IMG/VR virus record: IMGVR_UViG_3300042305_001773
Span: 62,001-126,000 of that record
Strand: one strand, 5' to 3'
DNA: 64,000 nucleotides
Shown piece after piece: positions 6,062-61,547 of this stretch (its first letter is position 1; each line of letters begins with the position of its first letter). Position numbers and translations under genes: made by a program. Under the pieces are notes generated by a model. That model was not told the origin of the DNA and did not search any database. It was given only the letters and a program-made list of their open reading frames with translations.

Positions 6062-8602
6062 TTAACTAAATAAAATTGACGGCCAAATAGCCACTGGGCC
6101 TGTGGGGCCTGTAGGGCCAGATGGGCCGCCGGATGGCCCTGTTGGACCAACCGGTCCGGTTGCGCCTGTTTCACCAAACGGACCTGTTGGCCCGCTCGCG
6201 CCTGTCGGACCGGTGACGCCAGTCGGTCCAGTTGTTCCCTGCGGACCTGTTGGTCCAGTTGGGCCTTCAACACCTGTCGCGCCATCTGGTCCAATGGGCC
6301 CAGTCGCGCCCTCGGGGCCGTCTGGTCCGGTTGCGCCTTGTGCCGCTAACACCGGCACGCCACCGATTAAAATAACATCTTGGTACTCAGTCGATTCAAC
6401 GGTTGGCGCTGGACCTGTCGGGCCTGTTGGGCCATCCGGGCCAGAGGCGCCCGTCGGTCCTGTTGCGCCCTGTGCCGCAGCAACAGGAACGCCGCCGATT
6501 AAAATAACATCAGGTTCTTCTGTTGCTTCTACAGTAGGCGCGGGGCCGGTAGGTCCGCTTGGCCCGCGCGGGCCAACTTGTCCGCGAAGTCCTGTAGGTC
6601 CTTCTGGTCCTGACGGCCCGGACGGACCGACGGGCCCCGTTGGTCCGGTCGCGCCTTGTGCAGCAACAACAGGGACGCCGCCGATTAACAAAACGTCCGG
6701 CTCTTCAGTCGCTTCAACCAGCGGAGCCGGCCCTGTCGGGCCAGTTGCGCCGTCCGCGCCAGTTGGACCATCGGCACCCGTTGCGCCGGCTTCGCCGTTT
6801 GGTCCTTGTACGCCGTTTAAACCGCGCTGGCCTGTTAAACCTCTGGGGCCAGTCGAACCAGTCGCGCCCTGTACAGCGACAATCGGCACGCCGCCAATTA
6901 AAACAACTTCAGGAAACTCTGTCGGCTCTACAAGCGGCGGCGGACCGGCCGGGCCGGTTGGACCTGACGGCCCGGATGGCCCGCTCGGGCCGAGAGGGCC
7001 TTGTATACCCTGCGGGCCTTGCAACCCAATAACACCCTGTATACCGGTCGCGCCTTGTGGTCCGGGCGTGCCTTGTATGCCTTGTATACCTGTCGCGCCC
7101 GTCGCGCCAAGCGAGCCAGTAACACCTGTCGCACCTTGCGGGCCGCTTGCGCCTGTTGGACCCTGAATACCGGTTGGGCCGGTGGGGCCTTCTGGTCCAG
7201 TAGGCCCTATTACACCAGTTGCGCCAATCTCTCCTTGCGGTCCCGTTGGTCCGGTAGCACCCGGCGGGCCGACAACACGACCAATGTTTTGCCACGTTGT
7301 TCCGGTCCACGTATACGCAACGCCTTCAGCGGCGTTCACAGGGAGATCTTCGTCTGTTAACGCGTCTACGCCGATGATCCACGTATCGCCGATCACGGGC
7401 GTCCCAGCAGGCGGCCAGCTTTGCGTCGTTCCGTAAAACCGAACACCTACACCTGTTGCGCCGGTTGTACCAACCGGACCCGTCGCGCCCGTTGCGCCCG
7501 GATCGCCTTGCGGCCCGTCGTCGCCAACGTCGCCCTGCGGCCCTTGCGGTCCAGTCGCGCCCTGCGGACCAGTTGCGCCGTCAATACCGTTTATTCCGTT
7601 TGTGCCGGCGACGCCCGTCGCACCTTGCGGCCCGCTCGCGCCTGTAGGGCCGGCAATGCCTGTGGCGCCAAGTTCGCCTTGTGGTCCTGTCGGACCTTGC
7701 GTGCCTGTGGCACCAGTCGGGCCTGCGTCTCCAGTTAGACCGACGTTACCCTGCGGGCCAGTGGCACCTTGTATTCCTGTAGCGCCAGTCGGCCCCTCGA
7801 CACCAGTCGCTCCGACGGTGCCTTGTAAACCCTGCGGCCCTGACAGACCTTGTATACCTTGTGGCCCTTGCGGACCCGATAAACCTTGTAAGCCCTGTGG
7901 GCCTGTCGGACCCGGCAAACCCGTCGCACCAGTCGCGCCAGCGGGTCCTGTTAAACCCTGTGTGCCTGTCGGGCCGGGCTCGCCAGTCAAACCAGTCGCA
8001 CCAGTCGCACCGAGCGATCCAGTCGCACCAGTAGCTCCGAAAGCGCCCGTCGGGCCTTGTATACCAGCTGAGCCGGCGAACCCGCGCGGGCCTGTCTCAC
8101 CTTGCGGCCCCGTCGCGCCTGTTGCACCGCTGCTGCCTTGTGCGCCGCTAGCGCCAGTCGCGCCGGCCGGACCTGTGGCGCCAGTCGGGCCGCGAATACC
8201 AGTTGCGCCCGTCGCGCCACTGATGCCAGAGACACCAGCAGCGCCTTGCAGGCCAGTAGCGCCTGTGGGGCCTGCCGCGCCGGCTAGACCCGGCACACCA
8301 GTGGCGCCGGATTCGCCGGCAGGGCCAGCGACACCCGTTGCGCCGCGAGCCCCAGTTGGACCCATGGCGCCCACCATACCCGCGGAACCTTGCGGGCCGG
8401 TAGCGCCCGCAGGGCCGGTCACGCCGGTAGCGCCCCGAACACCAGTTGCACCTTGCGAGACGAGATTCAGCGCGGCCAGCAGATTGCCGACCGTTGTCTT
8501 TTTAGTGGTAGGAAGATCTGCCTGCTGATCAACGATTGCTATTAAATCGTCGGGGCCCGGTATTGGTTTACTGGGCAGGTCAGATATGCGCTTTTTAGCC
8601 AT
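6062..8602 (-). CDS. Collagen-like fibre protein (846 aa)
   Basis: Long Gly-X-Y tracts (GATGATG, GPTGPQG); four P-x-VE-x-TE-x-x-[DE]V-x-LIGGVP interruptions. Confidence 0.92.
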
Positions 8603-8921: not shown

Positions 8922-8941
8922 GGTTTCCCTCGACGGTTTAG

Positions 8942-9088
8942 TTATTTAGCCGATAACTGGTACATAGCCACATTGCTGACGGCGTAACAGAAGAACGCCA
9001 ACCCGAGCCACGGATTATTTTTCCAACACTGCTCGGCGGCGGCATATGCGTAAATCGCCGACACCACTAGAAGCAACCAGCCGCTCAT
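8942..9088 (-). CDS. Small membrane protein (48 aa, not in ORF track)
   Basis: Translated by hand: MSGWLLLVVSAIYAYAAAEQCWKNNPWLGLAFFCYAVSNVAMYQLSAK; two TM segments. Confidence 0.7.
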   Translation of the reverse strand: MSGWLLLVVSAIYAYAAAEQCWKNNPWLGLAFFCYAVSNVAMYQLSAK

Positions 9089-9098
9089 ATCACCACTT

Positions 9099-9145
9099 AA
9101 AAAAAGACCCGCCGAGTGAGCATCGTTGAGAGGCCCGGCGGGTTT
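9099..9145 (-). terminator. Intrinsic terminator
   Basis: Minus strand ACCCGCCGGG-N17-CTCGGCGGGT, then C and a T7 run. Confidence 0.75.
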
Positions 9146-9167
9146 GCTGCGTTAAATTCAAAGCAAC

Positions 9168-9598: not shown

Positions 9599-11872
9599 CT
9601 ACACAATGGTTGGGACGCGCCCGGCAGTAGTGCGCAAATAATTGAGATTGAAGAAATCTGGTCGAACCTTGATGGCGCGATACCACACGTTTGGTAGTTG
9701 CATTTCAAATACAACACCCTGATTCACGCCAGTCGTCGAAAAGTTAAATTCTACGGTATTTGGGTTGTCCGCGTTTAAAAGCAACGTGCCTGAATACGTT
9801 GTGTCATTTGCTTTCAAAAACGTATACGACCCGCAGCAGGGCGTGTTGCCGTACGGCGATGCGCCGTGCGCCCGAACAATCGCCAGAGAATTCGCAAGAT
9901 CTATTTCGTATACGACGCCGCGGTGCGGGCGACTAGAGCACGTCTGATTGTCTGAAATAGAGACGATATCGTTGCCGGGTGTCAGCGGCGTAAAATCTAC
10001 GTGCCAGCGTGCGTCGTGTTGCGCGTCAGTGCCGTTGTATTGACTACCAGATACCGTAGGCTCACCTTGCGGCGTTAACCATTTAGTATTCTGCGTCATA
10101 TTTTGTTTGATAACAGGCGCAAGCGGGCCGGCGTGACAGTAACCAGTACCAGAGATAATCCAAATGATATCTTTTGTCTCGTAGTCAATAGCGAACACTG
10201 CGCCGTTGTGCCGGCAGCTGACCACGATATTGCCGGTTACAGGATTGACGTCGACAGAATTCAGGTGGAAGTAGTCTGAATACGTGGTGTTGAAGTAATC
10301 GTCACTCCACCATTCCCATACGATCTGGCCCTGTGGGTTTTGTTCTTGGATATAAAAGCCGGTGGCGTCATATGACTCGCACAAGATGTTGCCCTTGCGC
10401 GCTCCGGGCCCCTTTACGGCGTGGGATTCGTGAATTTCCCATGTGTGAAAACCGCCGCGCGTGTCGGGGTTAATCATCGTATAGGGCTTGGCCGTTAAAT
10501 CGTTCAAACCGATATTGATGTCCCAGCGCGGCGCGGTGTTTGTAGTGCCGTTGGTCATTAGTTTGTTTTTGTCCCACCCGGCGTGCAAACTGACAACTTC
10601 TGCCAGTGAACTGTCGTTGTATGTATACCAAACAGGCACGGCGTTTGAATTGTAAACTGCCATATACGCGCCAACGGGCGCCGCAATGTAGTAGCCCGGA
10701 ACATACGCGTTTGTTTTTGTAGAGATGACGGGTAACGCCGGAAAGTCGCTCGGGAGAATGCGTACGAAATAACTCTGCGCGCCAATTTTGATGCGCAGCG
10801 CTTTATTGACCGTCGCTGTACCTGTGACCGCGGTGCCGCCATTGATGGTGACAGAATAATTGCGCGCAGATGAGCTGTAGAAATCTGTACCCGACCAGAC
10901 AACGTAATCCTGAATTGCCGGATTGAAAGCCGGCTCCATGTCGTTGCCGTCCACAGTAACCGCGAGGCTCGTTACTGTGGCGTTCGACGGAATCTCGACG
11001 AACATGTCCGAGAACAGAGGCTCCTCAGAGATCAATTCCGTAGAAAGAACAGTCGCAGCCCACTGCACCTGATGCGCTGTTGGACCAGTGACCGTGATTG
11101 CAAGCGCTTTGTTTACGCCGTCGGCAGTGACTTCAACGCCAGAGTCTTCCGGCCAGTCCGCGGCAACTACCTCGGCCACGGGAACACCGGACAGACTGAT
11201 ATTGTTAGCATAATCCCTGTAAATGCTGCCGCGGATCGTCCACGCCGCGGAAGTCGTAGCGGACAGGTCGTACGCGGATACTTTGACTTCAAACGCCCAT
11301 GCGGCTCCGGGCGCCAGCGTCAAATATCCAGCCGTACCGTTAATGTACATGCGGGTTGGCGTGTCGTTTTCGGTCGTTGCACGCAGCGTGTACACCGAAA
11401 ATTGTGCGTCACCCGGCGCAAAGAAACTGCCCGCCGACAAAGCCAGTTGAGATTCTTTGGCAGCCACCGCGTGCTTGCCCGCGGCAATGCTATTTAAACC
11501 GCCGGCTGTGTTGTTCGCACCGCCCAGCACAACAGAATTGACGCCGCTAGCTGTGTTGTCTTGTCCGCCCACAACCGCTGACTTCGCGCCAGACGCCGTA
11601 TTATTGCCGCCGCCTAGCGTGGCGGCATTTAGGGCGCTAACGGTGTTGTTCGCGCCGCCACCGGCAAAACCGTCTGTGCCGGTGACCTCGTTATTGGTGC
11701 CGGGGAGTTCGGCGCCGGTCGCGGAGTAGGCCAGTTGGTTCCACGGAGTGATACCGTCGCCATACTTGATCTTGCCCGTGTCGATCTCAAGACACGGTTC
11801 GCCCGCCGCAAGAACTTCGTTTTGATCAGCAAGATAACTTGCCGTTCCTCTTTTAATTCTTATTTCTATCAT
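9599..11872 (-). CDS. Fibre-like protein with C-terminal arylsulfotransferase (ASST)-like propeller
   Basis: IRIKRGT..GEPCLEIDTGKIKYGDG N-terminal module; GGxNNTA adhesin stalk repeats; cadherin-like segment; IHESH, FHLNSV, SCRH, QHDARW motifs. Confidence 0.8.
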   Translation of the reverse strand: MIEIRIKRGTASYLADQNEVLAAGEPCLEIDTGKIKYGDGITPWNQLAYSATGAELPGTNNEVTGTDGFAGGGANNTVSALNAATLGGGNNTASGAKSAVVGGQDNTASGVNSVVLGGANNTAGGLNSIAAGKHAVAAKESQLALSAGSFFAPGDAQFSVYTLRATTENDTPTRMYINGTAGYLTLAPGAAWAFEVKVSAYDLSATTSAAWTIRGSIYRDYANNISLSGVPVAEVVAADWPEDSGVEVTADGVNKALAITVTGPTAHQVQWAATVLSTELISEEPLFSDMFVEIPSNATVTSLAVTVDGNDMEPAFNPAIQDYVVWSGTDFYSSSARNYSVTINGGTAVTGTATVNKALRIKIGAQSYFVRILPSDFPALPVISTKTNAYVPGYYIAAPVGAYMAVYNSNAVPVWYTYNDSSLAEVVSLHAGWDKNKLMTNGTTNTAPRWDINIGLNDLTAKPYTMINPDTRGGFHTWEIHESHAVKGPGARKGNILCESYDATGFYIQEQNPQGQIVWEWWSDDYFNTTYSDYFHLNSVDVNPVTGNIVVSCRHNGAVFAIDYETKDIIWIISGTGYCHAGPLAPVIKQNMTQNTKWLTPQGEPTVSGSQYNGTDAQHDARWHVDFTPLTPGNDIVSISDNQTCSSRPHRGVVYEIDLANSLAIVRAHGASPYGNTPCCGSYTFLKANDTTYSGTLLLNADNPNTVEFNFSTTGVNQGVVFEMQLPNVWYRAIKVRPDFFNLNYLRTTAGRVPTIV

Positions 11873-20838: not shown

Positions 20839-23559
20839 TTAGGATACGACTGTTATGGGCAAACCAGCGGTGGCACGCAGGTAATCAATGTCGAAATAGT
20901 CTTTAGAGACTTTCGTGATCCTATAGAGATCGCCGGGAAAGTCTACCGCAAAAATGACGCCCGTGGGAGAAGCGCCGTCGCCGGCGTCACCGTATTCGAC
21001 AAGCGGCGGGTGTTGCTGCGTGAAATTTAACACGTGGCTAAATGAGCCGTTATCGTGCAGCATGATTTGATAGCTGCCGAGGTAGCCGGACGTGCCGTTG
21101 GGGGCAAAAGCACTAGAACGGTGAATTGCGTGCTCGTTAGTCAGGTCAATTTCGTAAATAACGCCACGGGCAGCAGGCGAGTTTTCGCTATTTGGCCAGT
21201 ACGTTAAAGCACGCGTTGCCGTGATTGTACCCGTAGCCGTAACCGTACCCGTTGTCGCGACGTTATAGGTAAACGTGTTTGCGTTTACAACGGCGACAGA
21301 AAATACACCATTGAACACAGCCTCGTTTGCCCCGGTTACCTTCACATACGAGCCGTTTACAAAACCGTGCGCCGTTGCGGTACCCGTGACAAGATTGCCG
21401 TCCTGCGCAAGTGCCGTCACCGTTTTGGGCGAATTAGTGCTGCCGGCAAAAAACCCCGCTTGATTGTCAAATATTGCAACAACTTCGTTGCCCGGCGTAA
21501 GCGGATTTACATTAACAGCCCAGCGCGCATGATGCTGGCCTTCAGGGCCAAGATACTGGTAACCCTCTAGTTCCGGCTCGCCTTCAAGGGTCAGCCATTT
21601 GGCGTTATCCAACGTGTACTGGTTTGCCGTCTGCTGAATACCGCCCCACGGTTGTGACGCACCCTGAATCACCCACTTGACGTTTTTAGTCGCGCGCTCA
21701 ACGCAAACAATAGCTGAGCACTGCCGGCAGCTGAACAGCATGTCGCCTGTAACCGGGTGGATATCCACCGAGTTCATGTGGAAGAACGACGCGTTCCGCG
21801 CCAGCGTTGTCTGGTCAAACCTGTCGCTCGTCCACCACTCCCAGCCGATCGTGTTTTGCGGGGTCTGCTCTTGGACATAGACGCCGTACGCTTTGTCGGT
21901 CAGGGCTTGTGAGCCGGCGGTTGGCTGCGTGACGAACGTGTTGTAAAGAATATTGCCACGCTGTTGCGGCGGGCTCTTGATTTCTAAAAACTCGTGATTG
22001 CCAAAGTTGTATTGGTAGCTATTGCCGTTTCGAATAGCTGGCAAAAAGCTGAATTCTTTAGTGTCAATAGAGTCTTCGGTGATCGTCATCGAGAAGCGCG
22101 TACCTGTGCCGTTACGGCTGACGCCGATCTTGTTCCGGTCGTTGCCGTGCTGCGCTAAGTGCGGCGTGCCGGCGTTCTGTACGTACCACACCGGTACGCC
22201 GTTTTCGTCGTACACGATATTGTAGTTGTTGACATTAATGTCACGGCGGCTTGTCGTGATGTAGTAGCCGGGCACGTAGCCGGCTTGCGGCTGTGTTGTA
22301 ATCGTGCCGAGCGGCATATCGGACGGGAGCAGGCGGACATAGTAATCGTCTGTGCCGTTTGTTACGCGAATAAGCTTCCCGACCGAGCTAACACCCGGAT
22401 AAGCGACGCCGTTAACCGTCACTGTGTAGGTGACAGATGAGCCAGCCGCCACAGACGTCGTCAGAATGCCGTAGTCGCGGATTGCCGCGTTGAATGTCGG
22501 ATACAGCGTATTTGTGTTACCGACAATAGAAGCAGTAATTGTGTTAATTGCGCCGGTTACGTTCAACGTGACAAACGCCTCGTAGTTAATAGACGGTTGC
22601 GGAGGCGCCGAAATCGTGTACGTGTTCTCGCCGCCGCCGTACAGCGTTTGAACTTCGGCTGGTGTCAGCGCGCGATTCCAGACACCAAGGCAGTCGATAT
22701 CCGCTGACACAACGTTCGTGCGTCCGAGCATAAACTTGGCTGTGGCGTTCGTCGGGCCAGCGCCGCTAACGAGCACGGCAGCGGTTTGAACGCCGTTTTC
22801 ATAAATGCGCAGATAGTTTTGCGTCGTGTCGTGTACAAAGACAATGTGGCGCCACTGGGCATATGGTAACTCGGTGGCGGTGGCAACTGTTGTGTTTGCA
22901 GTCCCAACTTTCGGTAACCACGTGAGCTTGCCGTCGGGCGCAAAATAAATACGGGCCTGATCAGCTGCGCCGAAGCCGGCGATATTTACAAGCGGATATT
23001 CCGCCGCTGTGGCGCCAAGTAGCGTCCAGTACCCCGGCGAGGGTACGTAGCCAGCGGCGCCAATAAACGTGTGCATCCGCCACAGCTGCCCGTTGAGCGA
23101 AACCATATCGCCGGGGCCGTATGTAACGCCACCGTTATATGCGCCCTTAAAGCGCGTATCGACTTTGACCCACATCGCTAAAGTCTTATGTCCGACAAAA
23201 GCGTTATTTGCGTAATAGAAATTACGCTTTGCCAGCCGCAGTGCGCCGTCGAAACCCGACACTGTCTGCTCCGAAACTCCTTCATACAGCGTGACATTGC
23301 CGCCAGACACGTCATCGACACGCATGCTGTTTCGGTCAAACATCCAGAACGCCATCAATCCTTGGCGCAGCTGGTCATACTGTACTTCGCCGCCGTCGAC
23401 GCCGCCGGACGTCGTAAGGTCAACGACGGAACCGTCAGCTTTTTTCGTAAACAGCCGCCCGTCGGCGGTATTGATAGCTAATTCGCCGAGGGCGAGGTCG
23501 GCGGCTGTCGGTACGGCGCCGGCGTCGCCGCTGCGCTTGTGCTTAATAATGTTTGCCAT
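20839..23559 (-). CDS. Fibre-like protein: LamG + CBM5/12-like + ASST-like propeller
   Basis: IIKHKRSG..LALGELAINTADGRLF N-terminus; YGPGDMVSLNGQLW module; NHEF, FHMNSV, SCRQ, QHHARW motifs. Confidence 0.8.
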   Translation of the reverse strand: MANIIKHKRSGDAGAVPTAADLALGELAINTADGRLFTKKADGSVVDLTTSGGVDGGEVQYDQLRQGLMAFWMFDRNSMRVDDVSGGNVTLYEGVSEQTVSGFDGALRLAKRNFYYANNAFVGHKTLAMWVKVDTRFKGAYNGGVTYGPGDMVSLNGQLWRMHTFIGAAGYVPSPGYWTLLGATAAEYPLVNIAGFGAADQARIYFAPDGKLTWLPKVGTANTTVATATELPYAQWRHIVFVHDTTQNYLRIYENGVQTAAVLVSGAGPTNATAKFMLGRTNVVSADIDCLGVWNRALTPAEVQTLYGGGENTYTISAPPQPSINYEAFVTLNVTGAINTITASIVGNTNTLYPTFNAAIRDYGILTTSVAAGSSVTYTVTVNGVAYPGVSSVGKLIRVTNGTDDYYVRLLPSDMPLGTITTQPQAGYVPGYYITTSRRDINVNNYNIVYDENGVPVWYVQNAGTPHLAQHGNDRNKIGVSRNGTGTRFSMTITEDSIDTKEFSFLPAIRNGNSYQYNFGNHEFLEIKSPPQQRGNILYNTFVTQPTAGSQALTDKAYGVYVQEQTPQNTIGWEWWTSDRFDQTTLARNASFFHMNSVDIHPVTGDMLFSCRQCSAIVCVERATKNVKWVIQGASQPWGGIQQTANQYTLDNAKWLTLEGEPELEGYQYLGPEGQHHARWAVNVNPLTPGNEVVAIFDNQAGFFAGSTNSPKTVTALAQDGNLVTGTATAHGFVNGSYVKVTGANEAVFNGVFSVAVVNANTFTYNVATTGTVTATGTITATRALTYWPNSENSPAARGVIYEIDLTNEHAIHRSSAFAPNGTSGYLGSYQIMLHDNGSFSHVLNFTQQHPPLVEYGDAGDGASPTGVIFAVDFPGDLYRITKVSKDYFDIDYLRATAGLPITVVS

Positions 23560-51680: not shown

Positions 51681-52407
51681 CGCCTAATTTAATCTCGTTC
51701 TCTATCCACCATTTGTATTCTGGATGCGCGGTCATGACAGCGGCATATGACCGTTGCTGCGCTTCGTAATCGAGCGCGGCTTTCCACAGATAGCGCTCTA
51801 CTGCTTTTTCACAGTTACGACGGGCCGCAAACGCGTTTCGAAAAAACGGTGTTGCGGTGACATAACTTTCGTCGCAGAGTACATATAGCTCCTGCGCGGC
51901 CTCTGGCATTTTGTATATCGCAGTTGTCGACATGCGTAAATGCAACGTCTCTGCCGCCACGTAAAAACGATCTTTGATTATCCGCGGCATGTGCGCCATG
52001 TAGTCGCGGTAAATCTCAGCCGATTTGGCGCTGTATAAAACAGACGGGCGCATTTCCGTCAGCCGCTGGTGGCCCGTTGAAATGCGTTCTGTGGCGAGCG
52101 CCGAGAAATGCGCATACACCCAGCCGCCAAGATCCGCGCCTGCGCGCTCTGCCGCGCGCAGAATTTTGCCCCAGACGGGCGTGTGCTTCACGCCAAAGTT
52201 ATCTTTACCACCATCCCACGCCGGCCTACGTTTCAGATGGGCAGGCGCTTCCCAGTCAGCGACGCGCTCGTTGAGATGAATATATTGGTACCGGATATAC
52301 GCAAGTTTTTGCGCGTCGGTGAGCGTGTGGTACCAGTCGACCGACAAGATATCTGAATCAATCTCCGCTGTCTGCGTCGCGGGTTCGCCAAGAGCGCTGC
52401 GCGTCAT
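51637..52407 (-). CDS. Hypothetical replication-cluster protein
   Basis: Start reassigned to MTRSALGEP; lies between the two helicase genes. Confidence 0.65.
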   Translation of the reverse strand: MTRSALGEPATQTAEIDSDILSVDWYHTLTDAQKLAYIRYQYIHLNERVADWEAPAHLKRRPAWDGGKDNFGVKHTPVWGKILRAAERAGADLGGWVYAHFSALATERISTGHQRLTEMRPSVLYSAKSAEIYRDYMAHMPRIIKDRFYVAAETLHLRMSTTAIYKMPEAAQELYVLCDESYVTATPFFRNAFAARRNCEKAVERYLWKAALDYEAQQRSYAAVMTAHPEYKWWIENEIKLGVVEIRQHWRNYDAE

Positions 52408-53896
52408 GCCAATTCTGCTCCCATCCGAGGAGTTTGTAGCTGTTTCGTCGACCCAGACTCTTCCGGTAGAAGGTCGGGTCGAACGTGTCCATGCAATCCA
52501 GTACTTCGCCAAATTCTTTCCGCGTGCCGTCTGGGGCTGTGTAAATTCGGCTTACACGCCCCGGACCCTGCACGTCCACAATATCGCTATCACGGTCATC
52601 GGCGCGGACAAGAACGTTTAGTTGTTCAAAGTCAACGCCGGTGGCCCATACATCCGTGGCGATTACGCGCTTGAGTTGTCCAGACTCGAAATTAGAGCGC
52701 ATGTCGTATTTCTGTATATCTGTGAGTGGTTTGTAATCGGCGGGCAGAAGACCCTTTTTCCGATAACCAGCACAGTCATACGGCGACATGTTTCCATATA
52801 CGAGACTGAAATCAGGCAATTGCGCGCCGAGATGAACAGCGTGTTCAATCGTCTCTACGAGGATCAAAATCTGATGCGATTCTGGGTATCCCCGCACGGC
52901 TTCGGCGATGATACGGTTCCGCTCGTGGTTTGTCCAGATGCCGTATCGCTTTCGTGCCACGCGGTTGCCGTAGCGCTCTGCAGGGTTTGACCGCAGCCGC
53001 ATGGGCAGCCAATTCACGCGCACCGGAACAACCAGCCCAAGCTCTACCGCGTTCTGATAAGTCAGCTCAAACACCATTGGACCGAACATAGGCTCAAGCA
53101 CAGCATGAGCGTTATCCATCCGTGCATATGGCGTCGCGCTCAAACCGAAATTGCGGCTCGTGCGGTACCGCGCTGCCAACGCTGTTGAAAAGTTCAGCGT
53201 GGCAAGTTGGTGAACTTCGTCCGCGAACAGAAAATCTGCGTCACCATCGGAGTGCGCCAAGCTGCCGGCCGTAATCACGGTCACGCGCTCCCACTGTTTC
53301 CAACCGTCGCCTACGCGACCTACCTTCGGCAAAAGCCGTTTCAGGCTGCGCACGATGCGGTCGGCCACGTCGACTGACTTGGTGACAACGTGGATCTTGG
53401 CGGTCGGAAACAACAGCGCTGCCGCGCCAATCAGGGTTGTTTTGCCGAACCCCGTGACGGCTTTGATAATCCCGCACGGTACGCGAGAAATCGTACGTAG
53501 GCACTCTTCCTGTCTGGCGCGGAACGTGATCCGGCCGTCGAGGTTTTCCCACTGCGGCGTGAAGCAGTCTGGGCGTTTTCTTTGACCAGATCTGTCAACG
53601 AGCAACGTGGGGCAGCCAAGTTTCTTAAGCCTGTTCACCATGCGGGCTAAATATCCGCTGAGCACAATCACATGTCCGTGCTCAACCCGGTGCAGCTTAT
53701 ATTCTTTCGTTTGAAAGAACATTCGCTGCCCGGTAATCGGATCTCGGCGCGCGCCACCGTGAACCTGCTCGACATGCGAATACCGCAAGTCGTGCGTGAG
53801 CCGTTTAATCAGCTCGTCGTTCAGCGGTGCGTTATCAGCGCCGGTGAGCGTTAAAACGTTTCCAACGCGTGTAATTGTTACAGGCTGAGCAATCAT
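52358..53896 (-). CDS. Superfamily 2 helicase (UvsW/ResIII-like)
   Basis: RARQEEC, AVTGFGKT, DEVH, GLSATP, ATDVWATGVDF, QGPGRVSR. Start reassigned to MIAQPV. Confidence 0.92.
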   Translation of the reverse strand: MIAQPVTITRVGNVLTLTGADNAPLNDELIKRLTHDLRYSHVEQVHGGARRDPITGQRMFFQTKEYKLHRVEHGHVIVLSGYLARMVNRLKKLGCPTLLVDRSGQRKRPDCFTPQWENLDGRITFRARQEECLRTISRVPCGIIKAVTGFGKTTLIGAAALLFPTAKIHVVTKSVDVADRIVRSLKRLLPKVGRVGDGWKQWERVTVITAGSLAHSDGDADFLFADEVHQLATLNFSTALAARYRTSRNFGLSATPYARMDNAHAVLEPMFGPMVFELTYQNAVELGLVVPVRVNWLPMRLRSNPAERYGNRVARKRYGIWTNHERNRIIAEAVRGYPESHQILILVETIEHAVHLGAQLPDFSLVYGNMSPYDCAGYRKKGLLPADYKPLTDIQKYDMRSNFESGQLKRVIATDVWATGVDFEQLNVLVRADDRDSDIVDVQGPGRVSRIYTAPDGTRKEFGEVLDCMDTFDPTFYRKSLGRRNSYKLLGWEQNWHDAQRSWRTRDADSGD

Positions 53897-54396: not shown

Positions 54397-55338
54397 TCAC
54401 TGCTGCTTCGTGCTCATATGCTCCGCGTACGCTGCTCGCTCGGCCGGCGTTTTGAAAAACAAGTTGGGTGCGAACAAACCGTCTTTTGCGCCGCGCCGGT
54501 TTTCTAAACTGTCGAGCCAGTTGTAGCGTAAATAGCGCACAAATGCCTGCGACGCGCGTAGGTCGCCCTTAGCGCCGCCCCGCACAGCTTTGTGAATGCG
54601 ATACAGAAAGTTTGCTGGGTCCTGCAGATCGACATCCGCGGGCTCAACAGTCTTCCACGCCCGCAAAACGTTCGCGCAGCGCAGTTCACGGCTTTTGTGT
54701 AACAACCGTTTTGGCGTCGATACGTGCTCTTGTACTTGCGGCGTTAAACCTAAAAACAACTCAAGCTTTGCGGCGCGATCAGGAGCTTTTCTGTCGACGT
54801 ACCAGCGCGGGTCAACGATAGTCGCCAAAAGCTGTGCTGCGACCTCGCCGTCCAGCGTCGGTATGAACGCCAAAGCTTTGTGCGCAGGGTGCATACGAAA
54901 ATAGGCTTTCGCCGCATCATCAAACACAAAGTTAGCGCGCTGGAGTCGCCCGATCATGGCGTACGTCGGATAATCATGGACTGAGAGCTTGTGCCACCCG
55001 CCTGCAGCCGGGGCTACGTCTACGCTGCGCATTCGCCGCAGTACGATCTGTGGGTCGGCAATCTCTTCTGCCGTGTGCAGCACGTTTGGCCCCGCCACCT
55101 CGACACGATTGATCTCGTTTTTGTAGTGCCGCAGATACAACGCAGAAATAAGCTCTGCATTCTGCGGTAGCCCCAGCACGCGCACCTGTAAGCCTATGCC
55201 GGTCAGCACCGGAGACAGTAAAAACGAATCAAGCAATTGATCTGAATTTGTCGCCGGACCAATGCCGACAGAAAACCAGATCCGCCCATCTGTGTGGGTG
55301 TGCAGTTTGATTACGTTTTCGTCAACTACGCTGTACAT
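54397..55338 (-). CDS. IS110/Nop(Tas)-like protein, apparently inactivated
   Basis: AFIPTLDGEVAAQLLATIVDPRWY..AKLELFLGLTP matches the IS110 Tnp/Nop IPGIG..AA.LLAEI.D..RF...L..Y.GL.P motif; C-terminal RASQAFVRYLRYNW helix; no DEDD or SG catalytic motifs seen. Confidence 0.6.
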   Translation of the reverse strand: MYSVVDENVIKLHTHTDGRIWFSVGIGPATNSDQLLDSFLLSPVLTGIGLQVRVLGLPQNAELISALYLRHYKNEINRVEVAGPNVLHTAEEIADPQIVLRRMRSVDVAPAAGGWHKLSVHDYPTYAMIGRLQRANFVFDDAAKAYFRMHPAHKALAFIPTLDGEVAAQLLATIVDPRWYVDRKAPDRAAKLELFLGLTPQVQEHVSTPKRLLHKSRELRCANVLRAWKTVEPADVDLQDPANFLYRIHKAVRGGAKGDLRASQAFVRYLRYNWLDSLENRRGAKDGLFAPNLFFKTPAERAAYAEHMSTKQQ

Positions 55339-57475
55339 GCCGTAACTCCGGTGCCTCTAATTCAATTGCTGATTCAAACAGATGCGAAAGATTAATCGCG
55401 TGCGTGACGAGCAAACACTGCAAACCTTTTGCTGTGGATAGCTCGCGTAGCTTCTCTAGAACCGGCGCTAATGCCTGAATACGCGGCTGATCCAAAGACG
55501 CAGTCGGCTCGTCCAGCGCGAGTAAGCCGATTTCTTCGGCAAACATGGCGTTGACGGCGACTCGAAACGCAAGTGCCAAGACGGTTTTTTGCCCGACGGA
55601 CAATCGCTGGGCGACTTGTCGGCGGCCGTCAAAGAATTCGGCGATAAATGTCGGTGTTCCATCCGTGGCCACCTTGATAACAAAATTAACACGAAACACT
55701 TGCAGCAGCTCGTTAATCGCTGACTCTAGCCGCTGGAGGTTGCGCTGGGCGACTAGGCGCGGAGCGTTCTTCAGGGCCTCTCGTGCTGTTTCGGCAACAC
55801 CCGACCAACTGCGCAATTTCTTAGCCCGCTGTTCTTGCTGTCTAACCTCCGCTGCCTGCTCGTCAAAACGCTTCTTCTCAAACAAAATTTGCGCGCGCTG
55901 ATCAGCCAGTCCGGTTCGCGTCTTCAACTGATCCTGCAACTGGTGCAGACGTGTCTGCGATAAATGGGCGTCGGCCTGTGTTACCGAGATCTCTGCTAAC
56001 TCTTCCTCTAGCTGCTTTTTGCGCGACCGTAACGCTTCGATGGCCCCGTTGACCTGTGCGCGTTCTTCACGCGCTTTCTGCGCCAACGGTTCAATCTCTT
56101 TTTTGACGCGCTGAAATTCTTCGTAATCAACTACCGCCTGTTGCAGCGCGTCCTCGCTCAACTCCGGCGGCTTCACGGCCAGCAGGTCTTTTTCCGCCGC
56201 ATTAAGCTGCTGTTCTTTTGCTTCCCGGGCTTTCTGTCTCTTTTCCCAGTCCTGCCACACACCTTCTTTAAATGTCTGCTGGCTCGCGGCCTGTTTCCAC
56301 TCCGCTAACTCTTCTTCCATTTTAACAAGGTCGGCTTTGTACTGTTCAACCTGTGAGGCAAGCTGCGACGACGGCGTATGGCACGTCGGGCACTCGGCAA
56401 TGCCGTCTGCCGAAAACATATCAATAAAACGCTTGGCCTCTTTGATGCGCTGCTCTTTTGCGTGCTGATCGCGGCGCATCTCTTCTGCTGTCGGTAGGCC
56501 GGGTTTTTCTGGCTGCTGGTCTTTCTCTCGCTCAGCGTCGAGTTGTGCCCGCGTAGCTTGAAAGTTTTCTTTCGCCTTTGCCACGCTCTTGTAGCTTGCC
56601 CAGTGACCCAGCGCGACTCTCGCGGCAGCGTGAGACTCTTCCTGCCCGTTAGCCGCCTCTGTCAGCGCAAGTAAGTCGGCGTCGTACTGCGCAGACGCGT
56701 TAACAAGGTCATCCAGCTTTTTTTGCTGCAGCTCCAGCTGCTGTTCGAGCTTCGACAGCTCGCCCGCACCGCGCTCCCGCGCGTCCCACTGCTGAATCGT
56801 CGCTTGATCAGACCGCATGTGCGACAGGATGTCGTCGGGGTTGGGCAACTTCGCCATCTGCTCCGACAACGCCTGCGCCCGCTTGGCCGCGTCGCTGGCC
56901 TGCGCGTCTAACTCGTCAGCCGTCTGCACGATCTCGGGAATGTTTAGCTTTGTCAAAGACTTGCCGATCGCGTCCTGACACTTGTCAGCACGAGCGGTGT
57001 TAAACAACCGCTGAAAAAACTTATCTGTGTCGGTCTGATTATCGTCGATGAACGAGAAGATCTCGGTCTGCGACACAATAATGAACCGGCTGATGAATTT
57101 AGCGTCGACGCCCAGCAGCTTTTCGATGCCGGCGGTCACGCTCTTGTCGCCGCGGCCTATTTCTTTGCCGTCCACGAGCAGCGTGGCCTGCTCTTTCTCC
57201 GGGAGCAGGTGCCGCGTCACAACGGCGATATGCCCGTTGTGCTCGAACTCTAGCGTGGCGTACGCCGGTTCACCTTCGCGAGCATATTGCGAAATGTTGT
57301 CGGACTTTACGCCAAAATTTGGATTCTCGCCGGTGAGCAACCACCGAATCGCCCCGAACAAGCTGCTCTTGCCCGAACCGTTTTCGCCGAGAATCGCCAC
57401 CAGCCCGCGCGTGAACTCACACACTCGATAGCGGTGGTGTACCCAGTTCTTCACTTCCAGTCTCAAGAGCTGCAT
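55322..57475 (-). CDS. sbcC: SbcC/Rad50 ATPase
   Basis: GENGSGKSS, coiled coil with CPTC hook, LSVGQK signature, LDEPT, LLVTH. Confidence 0.94.
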   Translation of the reverse strand: MQLLRLEVKNWVHHRYRVCEFTRGLVAILGENGSGKSSLFGAIRWLLTGENPNFGVKSDNISQYAREGEPAYATLEFEHNGHIAVVTRHLLPEKEQATLLVDGKEIGRGDKSVTAGIEKLLGVDAKFISRFIIVSQTEIFSFIDDNQTDTDKFFQRLFNTARADKCQDAIGKSLTKLNIPEIVQTADELDAQASDAAKRAQALSEQMAKLPNPDDILSHMRSDQATIQQWDARERGAGELSKLEQQLELQQKKLDDLVNASAQYDADLLALTEAANGQEESHAAARVALGHWASYKSVAKAKENFQATRAQLDAEREKDQQPEKPGLPTAEEMRRDQHAKEQRIKEAKRFIDMFSADGIAECPTCHTPSSQLASQVEQYKADLVKMEEELAEWKQAASQQTFKEGVWQDWEKRQKAREAKEQQLNAAEKDLLAVKPPELSEDALQQAVVDYEEFQRVKKEIEPLAQKAREERAQVNGAIEALRSRKKQLEEELAEISVTQADAHLSQTRLHQLQDQLKTRTGLADQRAQILFEKKRFDEQAAEVRQQEQRAKKLRSWSGVAETAREALKNAPRLVAQRNLQRLESAINELLQVFRVNFVIKVATDGTPTFIAEFFDGRRQVAQRLSVGQKTVLALAFRVAVNAMFAEEIGLLALDEPTASLDQPRIQALAPVLEKLRELSTAKGLQCLLVTHAINLSHLFESAIELEAPELRHVQRS

Positions 57476-59259: not shown

Positions 59260-59502
59260 TTAGTCGCTTTCGGGCGGCGGCTCGTCTGTCACTCTCGCAA
59301 TAATACCATCTCGCTCAAGATCCTGCAGCAGCGGTTCAATTCGTCGTATGTATCCGCACAACATACTCATCCAGTTCACTAGCTCTTCCGGTGTACGCTG
59401 TAAAAACTTTTCTTTAAGCTCTTCTTCGGTGAGGTATTCGACCTCGATGTTCTCAAATTTATCGCCGCGCTTAGCGCGCAAATAAGCGCCGGTCATTCGC
59501 AA
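59260..59502 (-). CDS. Hypothetical protein
   Basis: Coupled ORF. Confidence 0.65.
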   Translation of the reverse strand: MRMTGAYLRAKRGDKFENIEVEYLTEEELKEKFLQRTPEELVNWMSMLCGYIRRIEPLLQDLERDGIIARVTDEPPPESD

Positions 59503-59726
59503 GCCTCCGTAGAAACACAGCCATCAAGGTGAAACACCGCCTTAAAAGTATCAAAAGCTTTTTCAACACGCATCCGCGTCATTACAGAAACGCCAATTAG
59601 CGCGTTTGCAATTTCATCAATATCGACATCTTCTTTTTCCAGTATGCGCTCTACCAGCAGGTCGAGATCGTCTGCTGTGTTGTAAATGTTTGTGATATCC
59701 GTCTCTAGTTGAAAACGATCAGCCAT
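59493..59726 (-). CDS. Hypothetical protein
   Basis: AGGAG RBS. Confidence 0.7.
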   Translation of the reverse strand: MADRFQLETDITNIYNTADDLDLLVERILEKEDVDIDEIANALIGVSVMTRMRVEKAFDTFKAVFHLDGCVSTEACE

Positions 59727-59778
59727 TTTTAGCTCCTAGTAAAAAAAACAATAAGTAGCTCAGCCGTCAGCCTCCGAT

Positions 59779-59854
59779 TAGCCGGGGTGAGATTTGAACT
59801 CACGGTCTCTAGCTTATGAGGCTAGCGAGGACGACCTAACTCCTCTACCCGGCG
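59779..59854 (-). tRNA. trnM: tRNA-Met(CAU), initiator-like
   Basis: CGCCGGG/CCCGGCT acceptor with C1:U72 mismatch, A11:U24, CTAGC-CTCATAA-GCTAG anticodon arm, GTGAG-TTCAAAT-CTCAC T arm. Confidence 0.92.
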
Positions 59855-59865
59855 ATAAATGTGTT

Positions 59866-61440: not shown

Positions 61441-61476
61441 ACGTGCGTCCTTTGTGTTTGACTTACCAAACTACAG

Positions 61477-61547
61477 ATGCCCGACTAGGATTCGAACCTA
61501 GACAAAGGGAACCAAAATCCCTTGTGCTACCGTTACACCATCGGGCA
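61477..61547 (-). tRNA. trnQ: tRNA-Gln(UUG)
   Basis: TGCCCGA/TCGGGCA acceptor, AGGGA-TTTTGGT-TCCCT anticodon arm, CTAGG-TTCGAAT-CCTAG T arm. Confidence 0.93.

Follow-up and report, generated by a model that had tools for sequence, protein, structure and literature searches.

What does a protein resembling the transposases of IS110 elements do in the middle of a phage DNA-repair operon? The question is raised by a gene for a protein of 313 amino acids (aa) in a window of 64,000 nucleotides, bases 62001-126000 of the 205,044-bp virus record IMGVR_UViG_3300042305_001773, which comes from an uncultured lake phage of 205 kb, is rated complete by CheckV and carries nearly all its genes on the minus strand. 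An earlier note, made from the letters of this window, had read the product as a domesticated, catalytically dead relative of IS110 and Tas proteins with neither insertion sequence (IS) ends nor a guide array beside it. With high confidence we take it to be an inactivated Tas/IS110-like protein that lacks the coiled coil of its relatives, and we lean slightly towards the joint reading in which this identity goes together with an accessory function in the phage Mre11-Rad50 machine.

An inactivated relative of TasR and IS110

The coding sequence runs from an ATG on the minus strand exactly as the earlier note had placed it, and homologues and selection confirm it as a real gene. The AlphaFold2 (AF2) model, computed from 129 sequences, has a pLDDT of 96.1 (above 90 almost throughout) and a pTM of 0.93. 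Its N-terminal domain shows an RNase H-like order of strands (residues 9-14, 20-24, 51-55 and 78-82) and helices (36-40, 58-72 and 90-105), and the segment RVEVAGP (78-84), with which the strand and helix order had been read to end, is strand 5 of the model. In a Foldseek search of the PDB, TasR (9MTY), IS621 (8WT6/8WT9) and ISCro4 took ranks 1-10 and 12 with probabilities of 0.54-0.94 over 314-352 columns, the remaining matches from rank 11 downwards being noise (probability <0.1). An exhaustive VIA-align comparison with 48,161 representative PDB chains reached Z scores of 8 or above for TasR (Z 10.7, 232 of 294 residues, model residues 8-305, collinear) and the Nop domain of TasH (Z 8.3-8.5, model residues 127/128-308) only; VIA-align gave IS621 a Z of 7.7-7.9 and ISCro4 a Z of 6.5. 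These four are the leading solved matches, aligned collinearly through both domains over 217-235 residues. As the two domains match in order, the likeness goes beyond the generic helix-hairpin-helix motif to which it might have been limited. No chain of Nop5 or Prp31 appeared among the top 50 of the exhaustive scan.

Other structure collections lead to the same family. IS110 transposases were the leading matches among the clusters of the AlphaFold database (AFDB), and an IS110 transposase cluster was the best match in the ESM Atlas (TM 0.48, 239 residues); the Atlas's own model of the protein (pTM 0.43) was too poor and was set aside, and the viral structure library BFVD gave no match. Residues 1-110 taken alone match RuvX/YqgF (Z 6.6 for RuvX), the YqgF domain of Spt6/Tex and the poxvirus (Z 6.1), phage (Z 5.6), chloroplast and Thermus RuvC proteins, all at Z 5-7.

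At the level of sequence, the protein is matched by no model of Pfam, PHROG, NCBIfam or PADLOC (for Pfam and NCBIfam even at E<=1, the Nop model PF01798 included), PF01548 and PF02371 find nothing in the six frames of the whole genome, and a search of PDB sequences with the family profile returned nothing meaningful. The hidden Markov models that the earlier note had named for detecting the protein therefore miss it, and the link to IS110 needs profile-profile and structural methods. Among 69 relatives, 12 match the PHROG family phrog_4285 ('transposase') through residues ~108-209, and one reaches PF02371 at E 0.028. Against an alignment of 18 IS110 proteins, made up of IS4321 of plasmid R751 and 17 genomic IS110 proteins, hhalign aligned residues 138-232 with residues 194-286 of IS4321, which belong to the Tnp domain, over 87-91 columns at a probability of 90-95% and P values from 9e-9 (about 1e-8) to 2e-6, bearing out the proposal that the Tnp/Nop motif is intact. 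The motifs IPxxD, DPRW (compare GDxxRF) and LGLxP are common to this protein family and the IS110 Tnp domain. No significant profile match was obtained between the N-terminal 137 residues and the IS110 DEDD domain (hhalign, P 0.55), so it is structure alone that marks the N-terminal domain as RuvC-like.

The residues on which catalysis depends in the relatives are missing, as the earlier note had noticed for both the DEDD acids and the serine of the 'SG' motif. IS621 requires D11, E60, D102 and D105 together with S241, and the activity of TaTasR needs D11 (PMC12045711). Among the 129 sequences, Asp or Glu occurs 0-5 times per position on strand 1 (9-14) and never on strand 4 (51-56), the catalytic positions having been mapped through secondary structure and VIA/alignment ranges and not by residue-level superposition. 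Conserved in the N-terminal domain instead are K/R11, H13, R53, G56 and N60. In the hhalign alignment the serine column of IS110 falls on E204/H205, which are not conserved, and the nearby S207 is present in just 44 of 126 sequences. We also considered Y304 and H307 as a Tyr/His dyad for RNA processing like that of TasH and rejected it, as 31 of the 129 sequences have Phe in place of Y304 and both positions are helical in the model rather than part of a loop.

The dimerising coiled coil is absent as well. It comprises residues 123-188 (66 aa) in IS621 and K109-H168 (60 aa) in TaTasR (bioRxiv 10.64898/2026.09.09.750476), whereas only 17-27 residues with a single 12-residue helix separate the two domains here, and the model has no long helix pair at 110-138. 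The high pTM of the model points to direct contact between the two domains.

The kinship of TIGR-Tas systems with IS110 and Nop5 is already published (PMC12045711, PMC11213020). TasR (TaTasR; Faure et al. 2025, PMC12045711) resembles the protein in the succession of a RuvC fold and a Nop C-terminal domain, in its size of ~300-320 aa and in being common in phages; it differs in its active RuvC domain (D11 and other acids), in the coiled coil through which it forms a C2 dimer and in the adjacent TIGR array with 36-nt guides, in place of which our gene has a DNA-repair operon and no array. The RuvC pocket of PateTasR is likewise dead and holds basic residues, but dead TasRs keep their coiled coils and arrays and act as RNA-guided repressors. 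A viral branch of TasR that has neither array nor coiled coil has been described in a preprint, with its guide source left open (Xu et al. 2026, bioRxiv 10.64898/2026.09.09.750476), and our protein agrees with all four features of that description, i.e. it is compact and TasR-like, has no coiled coil, lies in a dense viral genome and has no array. It probably belongs to this branch, an assignment made from the description. For that branch the accessible part of the preprint gives no function and no neighbours, and mentions neither a coupling to Rad50 nor a Cas7-like neighbour. The kind of protein was thus known and the variant glimpsed; the novelty lies in its genomic partners and its likely role.

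The IS110 recombinases (IS621, ISCro4 and IS4321) share with it the Tnp homology, the fold of the whole chain (Z 6.5-7.9) and the size class, but our protein has no DEDD acids, no serine of the S241 type, no coiled coil, bridge RNA or element ends, and its gene is immobile. Nop5, Nop56, Nop58 and Prp31 offer a precedent within the lineage for the loss of catalysis, the inactive RuvC-like N-terminal domain of Nop5 serving as a protein-docking module next to its Nop domain; in contrast to Nop5 and Prp31, our protein has neither a match to PF01798 nor a coiled coil, and its context includes no L7Ae or fibrillarin. With the Holliday-junction resolvases RuvC and RuvX it has the RNase H fold in common, but not their carboxylates.

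A gene fixed behind rad50

Read directly from the sequence, the start of the gene overlaps the final 17 nt of rad50 (55322-55338), a GGAG lies 9 nt 5' of its ATG, and a single base separates its TGA from the ATG of the next gene. As neighbouring genes overlap or abut on both sides, no non-coding space remains and there is no room for IS ends, just as the earlier note had observed; intergenic gaps in the whole genome reach ~444 nt at most and none occurs within the operon. On sequence grounds, the 17-nt overlap suggests translational coupling to rad50. The gene is present in a single copy with no paralogue in its own genome, and no IS110 gene was found in the 205 kb. Single copy, overlapping neighbours and a synteny that is fixed across loci agree with the view that it is not a mobile IS.

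This synteny was counted in loci with enough upstream sequence. The gene directly follows rad50 in all 41 of them, down to 30% identity; among these are 37 of 37 loci (36 from IMG/VR, at 48-100% identity, and one Logan contig, L038, at 31%) and the distant loci L066, L067 and L069 (30-37% identity), and the abutting or overlapping arrangement with rad50 recurs in related loci. The gene order shared by the 37 loci is a protein of ~206 aa, Mre11, Rad50, the target protein, a 165-aa protein, a superfamily 2 (SF2) helicase, a protein of ~250-290 aa, DnaB and primase (Table 1), and a UvsX-like recombinase and a family-A DNA polymerase also accompany the module. In most loci the helicase follows either the target gene or the 165-aa gene, and among the distant loci it follows downstream in L038, L067 and L069. 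The context of the Rad50-like gene is clearly one of replication and recombination. Its product finds its best PADLOC match in the Lamassu SMC subunit LmuB (1.2e-38), which fits the reported derivation of Lamassu from Rad50-type repair proteins.

The 165-aa neighbour is predicted, with good confidence, to have the fold of the Cas7/Csm3/Cmr4-like RAMP proteins. Foldseek returned 68 PDB matches at E<=1e-3, and all 50 of these that were listed are entries of CRISPR-Cas effector complexes, mostly of type III Csm/Cmr and type VII; VIA-align placed 125 chains at Z>=8, the highest score being 11.2, the AFDB search reached Cmr6/RAMP at 3e-7, and an independent ESMFold model of the protein's cluster matches PF03787 with a TM of 0.74. 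The protein carries a conserved G-K-Y-R-G-F-S loop and an invariant D33. By sequence it matches no model of Pfam (PF03787 included), PHROG, NCBIfam or PADLOC, and a scan of the whole genome found no CRISPR array, nor were cas genes noted. It is 63-98% identical across the clade and thus more conserved than the target protein. Its gene occurs in 36 of the 37 loci and in L069 (45% identity) and is absent in L038, L066 and L067. The coupling to rad50 and this Cas7-like neighbour, neither of which the earlier note had remarked on, are the most informative clues to the function of the target protein.

The family itself is large and made up of hypothetical proteins. A word-indexed search gave 326 homologue clusters of ~311-318 aa, all annotated as hypothetical, and when HMMER was run exhaustively against 1.84 billion representatives, 759 clusters passed E<=1e-3, nearly all of them over the full length; the figure is a lower bound with clusters drawn at 50% identity. 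The ratio of non-synonymous to synonymous substitution (dN/dS) against orthologues is 0.03-0.08 and denotes strong purifying selection. At least 20 metagenome runs from lakes or fresh water contain DNA of the phage, the family occurs in such runs from at least 17 studies, and among 185,579 species genomes it was met in one metagenome-assembled genome only. Searching 50,697 deposited phage genomes by tblastn with the target protein, a distant relative and Rad50 as queries revealed no relatives, and the family-A DNA polymerase of the phage is only 22-25% identical to those of T5-like and SPO1-like phages; judged by these sequence comparisons, the clade is one with no cultured relative.

Table 1. 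Features of the gene, its operon and other parts of the window (positions are those of the window unless stated otherwise)
Feature	Position	Strand	Basis or remark
Target coding sequence, 313 aa	54397..55338	-	read from sequence
RNase H/RuvC-like domain lacking catalytic carboxylates, residues 1-110	55009..55338	-	secondary structure, VIA matches, Asp/Glu counts
Linker with invariant GGWH, residues 111-127	54958..55008	-	AF2 model, hhalign ranges
Nop C-terminal/Tnp-like helical domain, residues 128-308	54415..54957	-	match to TasH Nop domain, Z 8.3-8.5
IS110 Transposase_20 (PF02371)-homologous core, residues 138-232	54643..54927	-	hhalign, phrog_4285 matches in relatives; catalytic-serine loop replaced
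Cas7/Csm3/Cmr4-like RAMP-fold protein, 165 aa	53898..54395	-	AF2 pLDDT 82
SF2 helicase (ResIII + Helicase_C), XPB/Rad25-like	52358..53896	-	Pfam, PHROG; PDB sequence matches XPBII, RAD25; true start probably the ATG at 53896
Conserved operon protein, 291 aa	51637-52512	-	no family-library relatives (library scans); probably starts internally, giving 256 aa
Rad50/SbcC-like ATPase, 717 aa, CPTC zinc hook	55322..57475	-	Pfam SMC_N, AAA_23, SbcC_Walker_B; phrog_77
Mre11/SbcD-like phosphoesterase, 393 aa	57417..58598	-	Pfam Metallophos, phrog_100
Conserved operon protein, 206 aa	58608-59228	-	no family-library relatives (library scans)
abiF RNA motif (RF03085)	9107-9142	-	44.6 bits against a gathering threshold of 37; in intergenic gap 8922-9167
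tRNA-Lys	32-102
tRNA-Met	59778-59855
tRNA-Gln	61476-61547
tmRNA, full length	L073:64-407, genome ~59464-59807	-	97.5 bits; just upstream of the window
Repetitive open reading frame, 2981 aa	11879-20824	-	matches baseplate-wedge/virion-structural PHROGs
Neighbour of the 2981-aa frame	9599-11872		tail-fibre-like N-terminus
Neighbour of the 2981-aa frame	20839-23559		tail-fibre-like N-terminus
Open reading frame with tandem repeats	6062-8602 (repeats 6138-8434)	-	9/18/27-nt periods

Several further observations were made along the genome. The XPB-like helicase is ~300-400 aa longer in L014, L020, L033 and L034 (open reading frames of ~887-919 aa) and in L038 (L038:6954-9443), where an insert of 270 aa that looks like an intein splits the protein directly behind the GFGK Walker A motif. 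A fusion of RAMP protein and helicase in L038 was accordingly rejected, the intein-like insert containing no RAMP domain. Away from the operon, the 2981-aa frame consists of about ten repeats of ~200 aa, and the two frames beside it share their N-terminus. Many tandem repeats of another frame appear collagen-like by eye from their period, and a second collagen-like repeat region lies at 165.2-167.0 kb of the genome, outside the window. The tmRNA stands beside a cluster of tRNA genes.

Function and its alternatives

The reading that we prefer on function, at about even strength when taken by itself, is that the protein serves the phage Mre11-Rad50 machine as an accessory that binds nucleic acid but has no catalytic activity of its own. 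It descends from the TasR/IS110 lineage, retaining the RuvC-like fold, a short linker and the Nop C-terminal/Tnp-like domain, and has become fixed behind rad50 in the replication and recombination module of uncultured freshwater phages that form a widespread clade (contigs up to ~205 kb). It would be made in step with Rad50 and, while ends are resected and in recombination-dependent replication, may recognise DNA ends, branched DNA or RNA-DNA hybrids or keep hold of them; in this clade it may act together with the Cas7-like RAMP protein and the helicase. As the coiled coil of TasR braces its RuvC helices (bioRxiv 10.64898/2026.09.09.750476), one may speculate that the surface which in TasR packs on the protein's own coiled coil docks here on the coiled coil of Rad50 instead.

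Accessories of Mre11-Rad50 such as archaeal HerA-NurA, eukaryotic Nbs1/CtIP and T4 gp32/UvsY offer a functional analogy only. The archaeal Mre11-Rad50 operon adds NurA, an active nuclease of the RNase H fold, and a helicase. No sequence relation or specific structural relation was found between these accessories and our protein, and the helicase partner here is an XPB-like SF2 enzyme and not HerA. Among the papers listed by a full-text literature search, none links an IS110-like protein to a phage Mre11-Rad50 complex.

Four points weigh against an accessory role of this kind. The tie to Rad50 and Mre11 consists of gene order alone; the RAMP gene, missing in three of the four distant loci, is not an obligate partner; the near-invariant polar residues of the protein could form an active or ligand-binding site that has gone unrecognised; and its fold, like that of the RAMP neighbour, is best known from binders of guide RNA, which favours a role that depends on RNA.

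The last point leads to the alternative that fares best, though we consider it doubtful, namely that the protein is an array-less RNA-guided DNA binder comparable to dead TasR or TasA. With a guide taken from a phage transcript, from the host's RNA or from an RNA that lies inside a coding sequence, it would bind at a specific sequence or bring Mre11-Rad50 and the helicase there, and the Cas7-like neighbour, whose predicted fold is that of crRNA-binding (CRISPR RNA-binding) proteins, might help to hold the RNA. TasR, TasH and IS110 bind their guides through the Nop C-terminal domain, and TasR is the closest solved fold; moreover, RNA-guided repression is proven for TasA and for TasRs with a dead RuvC domain, tigRNAs can sit within coding sequence and the array-less viral branch is explicitly left open (bioRxiv 10.64898/2026.09.09.750476). 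The genome itself speaks against such a guide. Tandem Repeats Finder detected only short coding repeats over the 205 kb, and no 7-10-mers recurred at a spacing of 25-120 nt when all 205,044 bases were scanned for k-mer periodicity, in keeping with the absence of a TIGR array claimed in the earlier note, although these scans leave room for a single or highly degenerate TIGR unit. Rfam yielded tRNAs, the tmRNA and the abiF RNA motif only over the whole genome, and the small intergenic gaps have already been described. The lost coiled coil, which dimerises Tas, IS110 and Nop5 proteins and carries the guide-target duplex, weakens the idea, raised in the earlier note, of a guide acting in trans, and with pLDDT above 90 almost throughout the model the protein has no disordered insert to accommodate an embedded RNA. 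No sequencing run recorded as RNA contained this DNA, and four runs from RNA libraries were matched only through a related protein.

It is unlikely, and less probable than an RNA-guided binder, that the protein is still an enzyme, with a non-canonical site built of conserved His, Asp, Tyr and Ser residues and acting, for example, as a structure-specific nuclease or in junction resolution or strand transfer after resection by Mre11-Rad50. H116 (GGWH), D122, Y126, H150 (HP), D176, S263 (LRASQ) and E300 are conserved at 78-99%, the N-terminal domain resembles the RuvC and RuvX resolvases, and no Holliday-junction resolvase was identified by Pfam/PHROG annotation in the window's module. Nevertheless, the canonical catalytic positions of the RNase H fold are occupied by K/R, H, R and G, E80 is Gln in 27 of the 129 sequences, Y304 varies as noted above, D176 corresponds to the structural 'GD..RF' position of IS110, and most of the conserved residues are aromatic, Gly or Pro, as is typical of a scaffold.

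Slightly less probable still is a regulator or shield that gates the phage Mre11-Rad50 to spare phage ends or acts as a decoy for a host nuclease or defence system. The tight coupling to rad50 would suit it, and a phage protein that controls Mre11-Rad50 at DNA ends, TelN, provides a precedent (PMC12624138), but the gene belongs to the core of the replication and recombination module and not to a variable accessory region, and it matches no PADLOC or anti-defence family. That it is a functionless, decaying IS110 remnant or a chance likeness of fold, as its escape from every curated family model might imply, is refuted by purifying selection, full-length conservation in 759 clusters and fixed synteny, and by sequence-profile and structure methods that arrive independently at the same family.

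Meaning for the phage and the family

Beyond the accessory role that we prefer, we offer one bolder and frankly tentative proposal. A dead TasR/IS110-like protein that has no coiled coil and a minimal Cas7-like RAMP protein, two folds known only from RNA-guided systems, may have been co-opted, along with an XPB-like helicase, as a new accessory module of phage Mre11-Rad50, in which the coiled coil of Rad50 would replace the lost one and RNA-DNA hybrids or a transcript-derived guide would choose where resection or recombination-dependent replication begins. If true, this would supply a function for the array-less viral TasR proteins.

Tas and IS110 proteins attract intense study, both as DNA tools that can be programmed and as the stock from which the box C/D snoRNPs (small nucleolar ribonucleoproteins) arose. 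This family would be the second case, following Nop5, in which the lineage was domesticated, and DNA repair would be its destination here. The puzzle of compact, array-less viral TasR proteins (2026) gains a concrete and testable context in the form of Mre11-Rad50, a Cas7-like RAMP protein and an XPB-like helicase. The arrangement also suggests that phage Mre11-Rad50 complexes can carry a dedicated third subunit.

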